Source: Adineta vaga (Eukaryota; Animalia; Rotifera). Taken from it: a stretch of DNA of 64,000 nucleotides. Each line of letters starts with the position of its first letter. The stretch's first letter is position 1. Location of the stretch: positions 10,974,001 to 11,038,000 of the forward strand of contig CP075496.1 in assembly GCA_021613535.1 (NCBI GenBank). The letters are read 5' to 3'. The notes beneath the pieces were generated by a model. It saw only the letters and a list, made by a program, of their open reading frames with translations, was not told the origin of the DNA and ran no database searches. Positions 4,965 to 13,691 of this stretch are shown here, in pieces. The translations under genes and the position numbers were made by a program.

Positions 4965-6372
4965 TTAAAGTTGAATAAGACCACGATTAAGCATTGCTTT
5001 CATACTCCAAGCATTGCGTGAACCGTCATCATTATAAAACTTCCATGTCCAATACGTCCAACCACCGGGTGATTCAGCAAATGCAGCAATTTGAGCACGA
5101 GCATATCGACGTAAATCATCATCATTGAAAGAAGCGGATGATGCAATGGACCATTCACCAAAAAATAACCAATTACCTTTCCACGCTTTTATATCATTTT
5201 TCAATTCATTTTCAGCATAACTGATCAATCGATCTTTATTCCAACCCTAGAAAAAATTCATAATTCAATGATCTATTGCAGAGCTAGAAAGAAACAATGA
5301 TGTCCTGTCTTACTTCGTATCCCCAAATTTGATAACGATGCCATTCATGTCGAATACCATGAAATTGAGGTGGTGGCATAAAACGCGCCCAATCACTATC
5401 GTAGGGTCCTTGTTGATAGAGTAAAGGTGCTACTGTCAATAGACAATCTGAAAATTGACGAATACGACCATAAGCATCATAATAAAATTGTTTTAAAACT
5501 CCTTCATCGGTTGTTCCTGGAAAACAAATTCGATTTGTATCAAAAGCAAACAAATGCAGTTACTTATACTTACTCATCGGTTCATTGATTAAACCAATAC
5601 CTAGAAATCCTACATCATTATTATATCGTCTTGCTAACCATTCGACAGCATCTAATGTATTACGAACATTTTCTGGATATTGAGACCAATGTGAATTGCC
5701 TGGATCTGATGGTGAACTATGATCATTACCATTTTGACTACCTTTTGCTGCATGAAGTGAAATCAATACGAGTACATTATTTCTCGGTGCCCATTCACGA
5801 ATAGCTCGATCTAAATAATTGATGCCACCAGGTGCATAAACTTTCCATCCATCTGGATCACCGCCAGGTTGATTATCAAAACCTGTAATCCAATAGCCAA
5901 CTGGAATACGAACTGTATTCATTTTAGCTGCAGCAATTTCACGAAAATCTTGTTCAGTAATATATGTATCACGATGTGTTTTGAATTGAGAATCACCTTT
6001 AGCATGACCTAAGGAGAAGAAAATTAAATCGAATTAATATAAAACAAAATCCATTGTTATTTTATACCGAGGTGTTGCATTGTTTTGAATTCACCATGAT
6101 TGGCAATACTTTCTGGGACTCCATTCCAAGCAGGTGAAGCTGATGTCATCCAGTATTCAGCAACAAGCCAACCACCAAGATTAACACCACGCATTGGTAC
6201 ACGACCAGCTTTAACATCATTTTTCAAATTTTGTAGTGCACTTTGAAATGAATGGGGAGAAAAACTCTACGATAATTGTTTGATTTCAGAATATTTACCT
6301 TTGTGCAGTTGCCATGAAAATATTAATAGCGAACAGAATCAGACACACATGCATTTTCATTAGTTTTGCCAT
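4965..6372 (-). CDS. Secreted GH5 glucan 1,3-beta-glucosidase (exo-beta-1,3-glucanase), 388 aa, 5 exons
   Basis: Exons 6372-6299, 6240-6068, 6008-5574, 5516-5314 and 5246-4965 total 1167 nt in frame. Signal peptide, RGVNLGGWLVAE, NTVRIPVGYW, HAAKGSQNG, catalytic NEP, nucleophile GEWS, and C-terminal GWTYWTWK. Confidence 0.93.
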
Positions 6373-6992: not shown

Positions 6993-8984
6993 ATGAATGA
7001 TAATTATTTAAAAAATTCAAATCATCTCAATTATCTATTCAATGAGTTTTCACAACGACTTACTAGAAGATATTTGTTCTGTTTTCAATTTAATAAACAT
7101 AATAATAATAATCAATTAGAACGTATACATCAATATTGTGACAAACATGGTTTCATATTACAGCATTCAACAATTCAAATGATACGAAAATCATTTACAA
7201 AGATGATGACATCAGCATTTGATTATGGAATTGAGCAGAAGAATTTGAAAGAGAAAAACATCGATATAAAACTGCAATTAACACATGTGAATGCATTACC
7301 TAGTCGAACTGAACAAGGAATTTTTCTTATTATTGAATTGGGAAATCTTCTAGAAGATGTTCGATACAGTCTTGTTTCATTATTAGGAAAACAAATACCA
7401 TCGTATGAAATATTACATAGTAAAGGTTATAATCTACCAGAAAATATACGAAAGAGTAAGGGTACTGTACTACTCGATCATTTAACTATGGGACTGAAAG
7501 ATTTTCTTAAACAAGTAAATTATCAAATTATTTCTAAATATATATATATATATGAGAAGAGATTACTTGGAGAAATGGCAAATATTGTTCTTATCAAATG
7601 TACAATTTCTTTTGTCAATTGTTTAAAAATAGTTGTTTAGATACCGTTCAATACAAAAACTTCTCATTCATTTCAACTTGGACTCTTACTTCATTTTCCT
7701 ATCAAACAAAATGATTTTCATCATACAGAAATTTTATCATGGTCAGATCGTTTTAATTGTCCAGATTTACTTCATCAAGATTTTATACGACTATTTCAAC
7801 GATCAATCGAATATGATATATCAAACTATCAAATTAACATTATTGCTTGTATTCAAGAAAGTGTTGCTGCATTGATTTCAGTTGCATTTGAATATCCGAA
7901 TACATTGATTTCATTAATATTCAAGCATACCTTTCAACTATCATTTGTCGAAGATACAGAAAACTTACGTCCGACAAATATTCATCAACAAGTACAACTT
8001 CGTGCACTTTATCGAACAATACTTTCAGTAAATGTTCATTGTTTACATTCAAATACATCTTCACAAAATCATGCTTTATTTCAAACCTTATTAACATCAA
8101 TTGACAGATATATTCTCAAAGAATTAAATGTCAATTATTTTGACGTATTAACATGTGATTCATGTTTACTTGAAATTATACGTATATTAATTCTTGAATT
8201 ATGTTTACATGAACAATTGTTACCATATTCATTATGGTCACAATCCAAATTGAATTATTCAGGATCTTTATGTTTAAATTTTCTTTCCTATCTTTTGCAA
8301 GGCAAATATACTAAATTGAAACCTTATTTGAATACATTAGGTTTAAAGCAATTGAAACAAAAAAATCTCATTCATCTGGAATACATCTGTCATATTATCA
8401 TTCGACGATCAACACAAATTTTATCTTGTTTAATTGTTTGTTTATCAGAGAGGTATAATGAAGAAAACTTAACGATTGCTATCGATAGTTATCTTTATCG
8501 TTTATGTCCAATTTATCAAATATATATGCACAATGAAATTGAATATTTATGTAAACGATGGATAACTATGTTTCATTTTGTCAATGCAACAAATATATCC
8601 TATGTAATTAAAAAAAAGAGAAAGAAAAAAATAGTCTGGCCGAGAAGTCCACTAAAATATATTTACATCGAGAATAGTATTCTGTATAATCTAAGTTTCT
8701 TACAAAGAACAATGAAGATATTCCAAAGATTATCTTCACACTAGATTAGATAGTGGCAGTTATCAACGAAGGAAATGAACAATCTGATCTTTTGAGAATT
8801 AAAGGTCCCATTATGACAACAGAATTTGTTATTTTTTTAGCTTGGTCCAGCAGTTGTAATGGGTTTACAAAAGACACAGAAAGCAATGATCAATCAAGAT
8901 GATGATATCAGTCGCTTGTATGTACGTAAACGACGACGACGACGACGGCGGCATGTAAAATCAACCAAACTATCTTATTCATGA
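6993..8984 (+). CDS. Hexokinase-fold protein with degenerate catalytic motifs (pseudo-hexokinase), about 542 aa; 5' end uncertain
   Basis: Exons 6993-7514, 7641-8603 and 8841-8984 join in phase 0. Colinear with hexokinase throughout: IKLQLTHVNALPSRTEQGIFLIIELG (~[26 protein letters not shown]), LGLLLHFPIKQ (~LGFTFSFPCQQ), ILSWSDRFNC (~LITWTKRFKA), NIIACIQESVAAL (~NIVAVVNDTVGTM), TIAIDSYLYRLCPIY (~TVGVDGSLYKTHPQY), LGPAVVMGL (~KGAAMVTAV). Confidence 0.8.
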
Positions 8985-11310
8985 CTTTCAACTAAAAATG
9001 GCTTCAAAACGATGCCTATTTTTTAAATTTCTTTCCTGTCTATATCATCACAAAGATATTTCGTGATGGACGATGAAACCGTTTTTGTTTGTATACGTAC
9101 TTGCATTTTTCAAAGAACTACTTGAGAAAATGTACATGCATTGATATTAATGAGATTGGATTGTCTACTGTAATTTCATCTTCAATCGACTAGGTCGATC
9201 ATATAGTTCCTTATGTATCCCACATAGTTTATGAACTACTTAATTTTCTACCAGCTGCTTTTTGAACAACTTATATTATCTAGTTATGAAAACTAAACAT
9301 CTCAAAACTATGCCTCATTAATTTCGTACAAAAGAGAAACATATACCAATTCAGAACTAAAGGAGCGAATGATAATTCATAATAACTTTGTATAAAACAT
9401 AAAGTACTTTTAAAATATTCCATCATAGGTCAATGTATCTTTAAAAACAGAACAATGTAACAAAAAATGTATCTGGTTTTTACAAGTATAACAAATATCA
9501 AAGACATAAATATGAATATTTAAATTCAATTATTCTTTTGTGAGTGCAAAAGAACACAAACGTACTGAACTTAAACAATTTTGATACTGAGTAGGATTGA
9601 GAAGATTCAATAATAAAAGAATTATTTAATAAGATTTATAGTGAAAATGTATTTATTAATTCCACTTGGCAAAAAACACTCGAACGTCATTGATCTCTTT
9701 TTCTTCTGCCTACGCATACAGATGATATGTTGGATAAAAATTTTTTTTAAAAATGAAGAAACTCGAGATAATTAAGCATCAAATTATATTCAAAACATGT
9801 TCATTTTTTCTATACTTCATTTTATATGTGTCTATTAATTTGTTCAGATTACCATTGAAAAATCTATGCAATAAATATTTTACTTCGTGTGTAAATATTG
9901 AGTAAATTAAATCTAATTTGTTTTTTGTTCTCATCTTCATCAAATTATGAGTCTATTAGAAAGAAGACTTATAACATTGTCTTACAGAGAAAAACAATAA
10001 TTGACAAATCCTGATCATTTTTTTGTTGTATCGATATAAATTCTCTTCTTTTTACATCTTTGCATAGATGACAATATGTAACTTTGCTGTTTTAACAATG
10101 TGCAAGTAACCTTAATAGAGAGAGAAAGTCGCATTACCGCTAACAATTTCCGTATATCAGTCACGAAAGTATGCAAATCTATAGATAATTTTTACGCACG
10201 ATCTTTCATTAGAAAACGTTCTTCATGGATGAGTTCATTTCAATAATAATGATTATATTTAAGAATCGTATGTTCTTCGATATTCGATATATTTTTTTGA
10301 CAAACGTACATACATATCTATCTTTTTATATGGTTATTGTCTTCTTGTTTTTAATCAAAGAAAAAAAGAATGTATTTATATATATATATATATAATATAG
10401 AGAAAATGAAGGCGTGTCACGATGTGAAATGAGAAAAAAAAGAAGAAATAATGGCAAGTTGGTGCCCATCATATATATATATATATATATATATCGAAGA
10501 ATTGCTTGTTTGACGTTCATATGGATGTGAATCGGAACTACAGAACGTCAACTAAGTATAAGTTCAATATTCTAGATTTTTTAAGCAAATGTAAAACGGA
10601 AAAGAAACGAAATATTATCGTCAACCATAAAATCCAAAAATATCGCTCGTCTTGTTTTCTCTCTTTCTCTCTCAATATATATATATATATTTCTTTCTCG
10701 CTTTCCTCCTTCAGATAACAAGAAGGTAAGTTAAGTATGGGAATTATTAATACATCTCATGGTTTCATTACATATTTTCTATTTTCGAGAAATTCTCATT
10801 AATCTAGTTACAAACAGACTTGTATAACACTTGGAAATTAATCTTCTATTAACTTTGTCGTTTCTCTAATAGATTCTTTTCTTTTTTTTCCTTCATATCA
10901 TATTGAAGATTGTTATAGACTTTTTTTCTGATATAATCTATGTAAATAGACGTTGCATTCAACAATCTCTGAATTCCTCTTCGGTTTTTATCGTTCTAAG
11001 TGGATTTTAGCCGGAAACAAACTGAAACTCCAGACAGAAGAAGCATCTTATTGAACATCTATTGACATCCGTCAATTCTTTTCAGAAGAGGAATGTTTCA
11101 ACAGTCTTGAATAAAGAAAAACATTTATTATCTTTCATTACTTTTTAAAATGACATTTAAATTATTACAAGTTAGTTGCATATTTCATTACCTATTTTTC
11201 TTTTACTTTTCTTTTCTATTTTCATCGATTTCCGATTGATTAATGATTACATTCAAAACAAGTCGATTTTTTCTAGATTTAAAACAATTATTTCTAATAC
11301 AACTGATCGA

Positions 11311-13691
11311 ATGAATACGTCTCAATCATTAACGAATAATTTTCGTACAAATACACCGTTATTATTTTCATTTCTATTTCTTTTTGCCTATGGAATTATA
11401 TTTCTTATTGGTTTAATTGCTAATATATTTGTCATTATCGTTATTATCAAATGTAGACGAATGCGTACATTAACAAATCGTTTTCTATTAAATCTTGCTA
11501 TATCTGATTTAATAGCAACATTAATTTGTTTACCACCAACGGCTTATCATCACTATGAAAAACGATGGATATTTGGAGAACTTCTTTGCCGATTTGTTCC
11601 ATTTATTCAAGGTATTTTTCTTCTTTAATAGATGGACATGTCTCATAGAAATGATTTATTTTTTACTAGAATGTTAGGCAAGAATGCATGAATAAACTAG
11701 ATAGATGAGTATTGCTTCGAGGCAAAGCAATAGTCGACTGATTTTCTACGTCCTAATACGAATGAATGATGAGAAAAAAAGATAAAGACAAAACTTCAAA
11801 CAAAGCAACATGAAATTGATTGAATTAATTCCGCTTTTAATTTCATATATTATAAAAAAGAATGGATAGAAATAGAATATATATTTCGAAATCATTTTTC
11901 GAATATATAACTAAGACAAAAAAAAACTTAATAGTATAATATTATTGTAAATAAGGAAATTATCATTGATTTTGTATGACAAGAATTCTCTACGGAGATA
12001 TTTTGATTAATCTTAAATGCATTTTTTTGAATATTTAATATCGCACGGTCGATATGAAAAGTTGACATTTTTCTCGAAAAAAAAGAAGAAAATCTCTATT
12101 CGTATATTTTGAATAGGTACATCTGTTGCTGTTTCAATTTTTACATTAATGGCTGGTAAGAATATTATATTTTTTAGAAAAGAAACATTTCGCTATTTAT
12201 CCTTATGATATTTTCTTTCGACAATAATTAGTCAGTATTGATCGTTTTCTTGCAATTCATAAACCAATTCATTCAAAATTATTTTGCACACCGTCTCGTG
12301 TCTTTATTATTATTGGACTCATTTGGTTTGTTTGTATGTTACTGATAAATAAAATTGAGTAATCATTTTTTCAAGGAAATTTTTTTCTTCTTTTTCTAGC
12401 TTTTCTTTTGATGATTCCTTTAATAGTACATCACCGTATAATTGATCCATTTGACATCACATTAACAGCATGTGCCGAAGAATGGCAACAAAATATGAAT
12501 GCTCGATTAGTCTATGATTTTCTTCTTCTTTTCGTGCTATTCATCTTACCATTAACATTGATGGCATATTGTTATGTTCGTATAAGTTTTTCTCTTTGGT
12601 TTATTGATTCACAAGCTCGTACATCATCATCATCAACAACAAATGCTGCACGTTATTCAACAATTTCAGAAGATTTTCCACAAGTCGATATCAATGATAT
12701 TCGAAGACAATCATCACAAAAAAATCGACCCTATTATATTCATTATCACAAGAAATATGAAAATGATCTTCTACGAAAACAAATCAATAAACCAAACGAT
12801 GAATACCATTCGTTAATGAATACTTCAGGATCAAAACTTCCATCACATCGACCACCGCGTAGTACAACAATGGATGATATGAAACCAAAATCATGTTCAA
12901 TTGGAACACCAACAACAATGAATACATCAGGTCCACATACATTCTGTCGCCGATCATCATCACTTATTGGTCGACGTTTTGGAGAAAATGGTTTTACTCA
13001 CCATCATCATCATTTCAATGAAATTCAACAAAATAAACAAGTTCCAACTCGCCATCGGCAATCGACTAGTCCATATACAAGTGGAACACTTCGAACAAGT
13101 CTTACATCTCTTCAAAGTCAAAATCGAATAATTGGAAATCTAAACAATAATACAAATCATCACCGTACAATTGTTGATGTTGAACGTGCTAGTCGATTTT
13201 TACAAAGTCGTCGACGTGTTGTGAAATTATTAATTACTTTAGGTAAGAAAAATTTGTTCTTTTTGTTTCTATCATACTAAATTCTTTCTTAATTAGTTAT
13301 TGTATTCTTCATAACACGACTTCCATCCAATATTGTTTCCATTTATATCGATATTACATCGAATACTTATATTCCAGATAATTCATTTACAAATGGAACG
13401 AAATCGGGAACAGTTGATAATTCATTAATAGATTTTCTATCACATGTTGCTAATACAGATAAGAAAATGACACTTGTTCTATATGTTAATCCAATTTTAC
13501 AATTATTTTCATTATCAAATTCAGCAATTAATCCTTTATGTTATTGTGTTATGAGTCATGCTGTAAAAAATCTCATCACACTTATTCGACAAAAATTACG
13601 ACGACGTGGACAAAAGAAAGCATCAGCGATTCCATTAACTCAACGACCTATTGCACTTAATCAATCATTAAAAATGTTGGCACATGATTGA
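11311..13691 (+). CDS. Class A neuropeptide GPCR (orexin/allatotropin or SIFamide/NPFF receptor-like)
   Basis: Exons 11311-11611, 12117-12155, 12232-12333, 12400-13242 and 13297-13691. Motifs: GLIANIFV, MRTLTNRFLLNLAISDL, WIFGELLC, SIDRF, FILPL, SNSAINPLCY. Confidence 0.9.

Follow-up and report, generated by a model that had tools for sequence, protein, structure and literature searches.

The N-terminal halves of the mammalian 100-kDa hexokinases I and III are regulatory rather than catalytic, and still bind glucose and glucose 6-phosphate. Among stand-alone proteins, HxkC and HxkD of Aspergillus nidulans are hexokinase-like proteins that regulate rather than catalyse, HxkD being nuclear (PMC3821154). 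HKL1, HKL2 and HKL3 of Arabidopsis are likewise non-catalytic, and HKL1 regulates growth (PMC2755033). An insertion within the adenosine-binding domain has been reported for HxkC, HxkD and the plant HKL proteins (PMC3821154). In animals, Drosophila Hex-t1 is a stand-alone hexokinase paralogue of ~50 kDa, which Swiss-Prot lists as 'Hexokinase-like protein' (HXK1_DROME). Here we describe a pseudo-hexokinase gene of the bdelloid rotifer Adineta vaga, located in a 64,000-nucleotide stretch of its genome (the window; GenBank GCA_021613535.1, contig CP075496.1, C4:10,974,001-11,038,000). The gene encodes a full-length hexokinase homologue whose catalytic motifs are rewritten, and it is under strong purifying selection across the sampled bdelloids.

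The original prediction for this locus was a three-exon model spliced in phase 0 into about 542 amino acids, and all of its exon and splice coordinates were borne out in the sequence. The parts of the gene are as follows.

6993..7514, forward strand: exon 1, 174 codons; N-terminal helices and the first half of the small domain (from translation, Pfam and the HK2 alignment)
7515..7640, forward strand: intron 1, 126 nt, GT..AG, phase 0, with an (AT)n microsatellite inside it at 7538-7553
7641..8603, forward strand: exon 2, 321 codons; remainder of the small domain and the large domain (from translation, Pfam and the HK1 alignment)
8604..8840, forward strand: intron 2, 237 nt, GT..AG, phase 0
8841..8984, forward strand: exon 3, 47 codons and the stop; C-terminal helix of the hexokinase fold (LGPAVVMGLQKTQKA...), then a basic tail

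The start codon is the ATG at 6993, which is preceded by an in-frame stop, and the frame closes with TGA at 8982-8984. The donor sequences are GTAAAT after 7514 and GTAATT after 8603, and a TTTAG acceptor stands ahead of 7641. With both junctions in phase 0, the three exons add up to a product of 542 amino acids (174 + 321 + 47). Intron 1 occupies the same site in the other Adineta and in the Rotaria loci, where it is 75-1725 nt long, and the intron 2 site is found in five other species, with a length of 108-910 nt. Didymodactylos carnosus has no intron at either of the window junctions. The flanking codons are contiguous in its genomic DNA, which reads ...DFLLQIPTNEQ... across junction 1 and ...DKCYLGPAAVMGLQKTQKA... 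across junction 2. Because this species encodes both junction peptides without interruption, both inferred splices are confirmed without RNA, and the locus is a real three-exon gene.

Homology to hexokinases was assessed exon by exon, the exons not being joined for the searches. Exon 1 matched Pfam Hexokinase_1 (PF00349) with 45.3 bits, and exon 2 matched both Hexokinase_1 (37.1 bits) and Hexokinase_2 (PF03727; 43.9 bits), where the cut-offs are 24.3 and 24 bits, respectively. In other words, both hexokinase domains gave significant profile matches on exons 1 and 2, and the assignment of the protein to the hexokinase superfamily held. The two exons are colinear with human HK1 and HK2, exon 1 aligning to HK2 residues 510-593, and PDB hexokinases were matched with E values down to 6e-20. 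The motif replacements were read from HMMER alignments of the window exons to human HK1 and HK2, in which every substitution that had been predicted was present at its expected position.

7332-7361, forward strand, exon 1: phosphate-1 loop DLGG-TNFR replaced by ELGNLLEDVR, with a 2-residue insertion
7683-7700, forward strand, exon 2: FTFSFP replaced by LLLHFP
7740-7748, forward strand, exon 2: WTK replaced by WSD
7854-7862, forward strand, exon 2: catalytic NDT replaced by QES
7923-7937, forward strand, exon 2: phosphate-2 GTGxN replaced by KHTFQ
8142-8159, forward strand, exon 2: EKxxSG replaced by DVLTCD
8484-8492, forward strand, exon 2: adenosine motif DGS/T replaced by DSY

All eight canonical motifs were replaced in every member of the pseudo-hexokinase family, whose identity to canonical hexokinases is about 20%. 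At the hexose contacts the family has His for the Ser of FTFSFP, Ser-Asp for the Thr-Lys of WTK, Asn or Asp for the Glu of EWG, and Asp for the Glu of EK. The protein lacks the sequence features of a catalytic hexokinase (EC 2.7.1.1) at the phosphate-1 loop, the Asp base of NDT, the phosphate-2 and adenosine motifs and the hexose contacts. Because the catalytic, phosphate and hexose motifs are all replaced, sugar phosphorylation is almost certainly gone.

The fold appears to have been kept. An AlphaFold2 model was built for a full-length Rotaria orthologue (P0004, 75% identical to the window protein over exon 2) from a 47-row alignment, and it is through this orthologue that the structure of the window protein is predicted. 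The model had a mean predicted local distance difference test score (pLDDT) of 87.4 and a predicted template modelling score of 0.88, and only residues 1-9 and 523-538, the latter being the basic tail, fell under a pLDDT of 50. Foldseek comparison of the model with the PDB returned exclusively hexokinases and glucokinases as top matches, at E values around 1e-26, among them Schistosoma hexokinase (1bdg; E 2e-26, target template modelling (TM) score 0.83) and human GCK (3f9m; TM 0.83). The two-lobed, actin-ATPase-like hexokinase fold was predicted over the full length of the protein. Exon 3 corresponds to the canonical C-terminal helix lengthened by the tail, and this long helix spans residues 490-527 of P0004.

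A word-indexed search with exon 2 recovered 31 protein clusters with 52-80% identity, and every named cluster was from a bdelloid rotifer (Adineta steineri, A. ricciae, Rotaria sp. Silwood1, Rotaria sp. Silwood2, and R. magnacalcarata). An exhaustive profile search brought in D. carnosus, and found no family member under a non-bdelloid name. When the window exons were mapped to the orthologous loci in A. steineri, A. ricciae, the three Rotaria species and D. carnosus, all three exons were open. Thus seven bdelloid species, including A. vaga, carry an intact pseudo-hexokinase frame. In five other species exons 1 and 2 have kept their lengths (174 and 321 codons) and the GT..AG sites have stayed in place; exon 3 was present in A. 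steineri and A. ricciae, where it had been overlooked by the annotators.

Analysis of codon substitution, with the codon columns of the three exons pooled for counting and for fitting a codon model, showed strong purifying selection. Pairwise ratios of non-synonymous to synonymous change (dN/dS, omega) by the Nei-Gojobori method (NG86) were 0.08-0.40, and dN was lower than dS in all 15 species pairs (Fisher p 3e-9 or lower). These pairwise values are upper bounds, since the GC content at third codon positions is 5-35% and synonymous change is underestimated. The tree-wide omega estimated by maximum likelihood (GY+F3X4) was 0.10, and omega was below 0.4 for each exon taken separately. Within A. 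vaga, DNA contigs of another sample differed from the window by approximately 7 synonymous and 4 non-synonymous variants and by one in-frame 3-nt indel, a deletion at window 7099 in the AAT repeat that codes for the Asn run of exon 1. A hexokinase homologue without catalytic residues that is under purifying selection is a pseudoenzyme of the HKL type, and the selected pseudoenzyme proposed in the original prediction is upheld by the omega of 0.10, the intact frames in seven bdelloid species and the predicted hexokinase fold.

The origin of the family was investigated with a quick tree of 47 sequences and with the profile search. The ten pseudo-hexokinases in the tree were monophyletic, with 100% support in the Shimodaira-Hasegawa-like approximate likelihood ratio test (SH-aLRT) and a very long stem, and D. 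carnosus branched first. Full-length family members scored 300-858 bits in the exhaustive profile search (fragments scored lower) versus 160 bits for the best canonical hexokinase. The nearest named canonical hexokinases in that search were from animals (fish HKDC1, the acanthocephalan Pomphorhynchus, and Trichuris), and the matches in the PDB were to mammalian hexokinases with E about 1e-20, to yeast with about 1e-4 to 1e-6, and to plants with about 1e-2. Because the nearest named relatives and the best PDB matches are animal, the family represents an ancient duplication of an animal hexokinase that predates the split of the sampled bdelloid lineages, and not a horizontal transfer. A horizontal origin like that of the adjacent glycoside hydrolase family 5 (GH5) gene was also considered and was ruled out on these grounds, fungal and plant matches being far lower.

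In the A. vaga genome (100.8 Mb in 6 contigs) the pseudo-hexokinase is single-copy, and the genome search detected no ohnologue or second copy of it. There were seven other hexokinase loci. All nine motifs that were scanned were intact at C1:6.06M, C4:6.97M, C3:9.96M and C6:6.00M; seven of the nine were found at C5:14.2M, and six at both C1:7.80M and C4:4.96M. DLGG[TS]NFR and NDT were present at all seven of these loci, which indicates that the catalytic capacity of A. vaga, as predicted from motifs, is supplied elsewhere in the genome.

The seven loci, catalytic-type by sequence, formed three apparent pairs on different chromosomes and one singleton. The pair C1:7.80M and C4:4.96M has DLGGSNFR, and its phosphate-2 and DGS motifs were unmatched by the simple patterns used. 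The C3:9.96M locus (L003) contains two segments encoding GSGxGA, suggesting alternative terminal exons. Several partly degenerate hexokinases ranked high against the pseudo-hexokinase profile (P0040, P0043, P0048, P0062, P0070, P0111 and P0123; loci L023 and L024). One of these, P0040, has EVTGDNIS as its phosphate-1 loop and a very basic C-terminal tail, and opens a tandem array of three hexokinase genes, apparently without introns, that lies on gut-metagenome contigs from an unidentified eukaryote. P0040 and P0043, both degenerate hexokinases with basic tails, were examined as possible sister groups and rejected, P0040 grouping with canonical hexokinases in the tree and so being unrelated to the family. 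A further sequence (P0033, 503 amino acids, from a Logan contig) belongs to the family on a very long branch; it is rich in Arg and Phe, and its N-terminus is aberrant. A decaying copy, a bdelloid of unusual composition or a faulty gene call could each account for it.

To locate the constraint within the protein, the 69 columns of the alignment in which canonical hexokinases reach a conservation of 85% or more were compared with the same columns in the family. The family retained 28 of the 69, which are Gly, Pro, Trp, Arg, Glu and Asp residues that define the fold, and had changed at the other 41. Special constraint on the active site was tested and not found: in the 41 changed columns the entropy was 0.77 versus a family average of 0.77 (permutation p 0.49), so the replaced positions evolve no more slowly than the rest. 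The only stretch with at least 95% identity in the family was VAALISVAFEYPNT (7863-7904), an inter-domain segment directly after the triad derived from NDT. That triad was itself variable (QES, NES, QEN, EEN and EGH), and QES is not fixed. Judged by these replacements, catalysis and ATP binding are lost, and canonical glucose binding is unlikely.

The protein ends in a basic tail, which the original prediction had described as a poly-Arg, nuclear localization signal-like extension. The tails found in the family were as follows.

A. vaga, 8925-8951, forward strand, exon 3: R-K-R7 run (RKRRRRRRR), encoded by cgt aaa (cga)5 (cgg)2
A. ricciae: HKRRQRRMK
A. steineri: weakly basic, 4 K/R in 19 residues
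Rotaria sp. Silwood1: RNKRHQR
Rotaria sp. Silwood2: RKKRHQR
R. magnacalcarata: ends after RAKS, basic patch lost
D. carnosus: IKRIRSRRRLK and 28 more residues
Environmental family member P0011: QRRRRRKER

The Arg run is present in the window as predicted, and it was without an indel in the DNA contigs of another A. vaga sample, but it is not conserved: it is an expansion of CGA and CGG codons found only in the A. vaga genome among the loci compared. The basic C-terminal patch is common but dispensable, because most orthologues keep a shorter patch and R. magnacalcarata has lost it.

The reading that we favour, and hold to be likely, is that this is a functional single-copy gene for a 542-amino-acid pseudoenzyme, a paralogue of animal hexokinases whose function is probably that of a scaffold or regulator acting through its folded body. 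An animal hexokinase duplicate would have retained the whole two-lobed fold, and would have lost its phosphate loops, adenosine motif, catalytic Asp and canonical hexose contacts before the living bdelloid lineages diverged, after which purifying selection would have maintained the dead copy. The folded body itself would most likely carry the selected function and act, like fungal HxkC and HxkD and plant HKL, as a regulator or binding partner, because the fold residues and the inter-domain segment are the most constrained while the replaced active-site positions are only average. The variable basic tail would be an accessory, which may help association with the nucleus, nucleic acids or membranes. 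The loss of all catalytic motifs, and the fact that RNA support was not obtained, might instead suggest a decaying pseudogene copy of a hexokinase. That explanation is effectively refuted because the frames are open in seven species that span crown Bdelloidea, the splice sites are kept and omega is as low as 0.10 with dN below dS in every pair; furthermore, the replaced motifs are themselves largely conserved inside the family. It is also highly improbable that the protein is a still-active kinase with an unconventional active site. Its fold is intact and Glu stands at the position of the catalytic base, but the glycine-rich phosphate-1 and phosphate-2 loops have become bulky or charged residues, with an insertion in the former, the Gly of the adenosine DG motif has become Ser, and the WTK Lys is gone.

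Several points weigh against the favoured scaffold or regulator reading. The sequencing contigs examined at the locus are DNA, span both introns and contain zero splice joints, so that transcription is neither proven nor disproven by them; the scaffold or regulatory role is argued by exclusion and by analogy; and five former sugar contacts have stayed acid or amide (N to Q, D to E, N to Q, E to N or D, and E to D). Because these contacts keep their character, though with altered side-chain length, binding of some other polar ligand in the cleft is possible. This would allow a non-catalytic sugar or polyol sensor, in which a polar small ligand binds in the cleft and domain closure signals, as proposed for Arabidopsis HKL1 and HXK1. 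Across the family the positions of GCK N204, D205, N231, E256 and E290 hold Q/E/N, E, Q, N/D and D/E, with Glu replacing the catalytic Asp in 9 of 10 members, and the most conserved block lies directly behind the NDT-derived triad. We nevertheless regard a sensor as unlikely, and the sensing role in the original prediction is weakened, as the place of the WTK Lys, one of the key contacts to the hexose, is hypervariable and holds S, N, D, A, G or R, the family has His, Arg or Asn where FTFSFP has its Ser, the phosphate-2 remnant varies across the family, and the changed canonical columns, taken as a set, match the family average in their rate of evolution. A nuclear regulator targeted by the C-terminal poly-Arg signal is compatible with the favoured reading and is, as a specific claim, doubtful. 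The window tail fits the K-K/R-X-K/R pattern (KRRR) and has 11 K/R among its last 20 residues, A. ricciae, D. carnosus, P0011 and two of the three Rotaria species have basic patches as well, and fungal HxkD provides a nuclear precedent among non-catalytic hexokinase-like proteins (PMC3821154). On the other hand, the pattern is not strictly present in the Rotaria or A. ricciae tails, the Arg run is a codon-repeat expansion confined to one genome, the tails of A. steineri and R. magnacalcarata are weakly basic or cut short, the part of the protein encoded by exon 3 has a family identity of 0.45 versus 0.72-0.77 in the other two exons, and the tail of P0004 was modelled with a pLDDT below 50. The proposed nuclear role depends on this loose and variable tail and is plausible at most. 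A scaffold or regulatory function, as the analogy with the fungal and plant proteins suggests, is most likely, and is favoured over glucose sensing.

Comparison with the known systems sets the bdelloid family apart by its independent origin, the loss of every motif and the basic tail. Like it, HxkC and HxkD are hexokinase homologues that stand alone and are without conserved residues for binding sugar and ATP; they serve as regulators, not enzymes (PMC3821154). However, only some of these residues are missing in the fungal proteins, whereas every motif is lost in the bdelloid protein, and the bdelloid clade is of independent origin, its nearest named relatives being animal hexokinases. The adenosine-domain insertion of HxkC, HxkD and plant HKL also has no counterpart: the HK1 alignment has a 6-column gap in the window sequence just ahead of the DSY remnant, which agrees with an independent origin of the bdelloid family. 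Arabidopsis HKL1-3 are, like the bdelloid proteins, inactive hexokinase paralogues preserved by selection, but they have ~50% identity to AtHXK1, far above the bdelloid value, and HKL1 is predicted to bind glucose still, whereas the canonical sugar contacts are not conserved in bdelloids. The regulatory N-terminal halves of mammalian hexokinases I and III are animal hexokinase-fold units that have turned regulatory, but they are fused to a catalytic half, unlike the stand-alone bdelloid protein with its rewritten motifs. The statement in the original prediction that no stand-alone animal equivalent exists was overstated. In the representative of the Drosophila Hex-t1 cluster, a D. subpulchrella sequence, the phosphate-1 loop is degenerate and NDT has become NVG, and Hex-t1 offers, by its motifs, a partial animal precedent; it differs in retaining the WTK, DG, EK and N-of-phosphate-2 positions, and forms a separate lineage in the tree. 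A literature search found no paper connecting bdelloids with a hexokinase-like protein.

The neighbourhood of the gene is partly shared among bdelloids. A GH5 gene (Pfam Cellulase) lies head-to-head with the pseudo-hexokinase about 620 bp upstream, at window 4965-6372 on the reverse strand, and A. steineri, A. ricciae and the three Rotaria species share this pairing; D. carnosus has an NTPase_I-T gene upstream in place of GH5. Functional coupling of the pseudo-hexokinase to GH5 was considered and set aside, the pairing not extending to D. carnosus. Downstream, at 11176-13280 on the forward strand, two open reading frames match 7tm_1 (rhodopsin-type G-protein-coupled receptor) and probably belong, as exons, to a single gene. 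A. steineri and A. ricciae have this downstream neighbour too, and Rotaria has a SPATIAL-domain gene there.

The bdelloid-wide pseudo-hexokinase adds to the known class of non-catalytic hexokinase-like proteins, and provides a clear animal case for a class so far characterised in plants and fungi. As a clade-wide, single-copy gene with an omega of about 0.1, a completely rewritten active site and a conserved fold and inter-domain segment, it constitutes a natural experiment on the non-catalytic hexokinase body. It is also a candidate regulator in the bdelloids, which are known to be asexual and to tolerate desiccation. Members of the family are currently labelled 'Phosphotransferase' or 'unnamed protein product' in databases, and the former label would mislead metabolic reconstructions of bdelloids. 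A more speculative picture, which we consider rather improbable, is that bdelloids independently evolved a fully dead hexokinase which, with its basic tail, would be a nuclear or chromatin-associated regulator of nutrient or stress responses, perhaps reading a non-glucose ligand through a cleft lined with acid and amide residues. If true, such a regulator would be the convergent equivalent, in animals, of fungal HxkD and the moonlighting yeast Hxk2.

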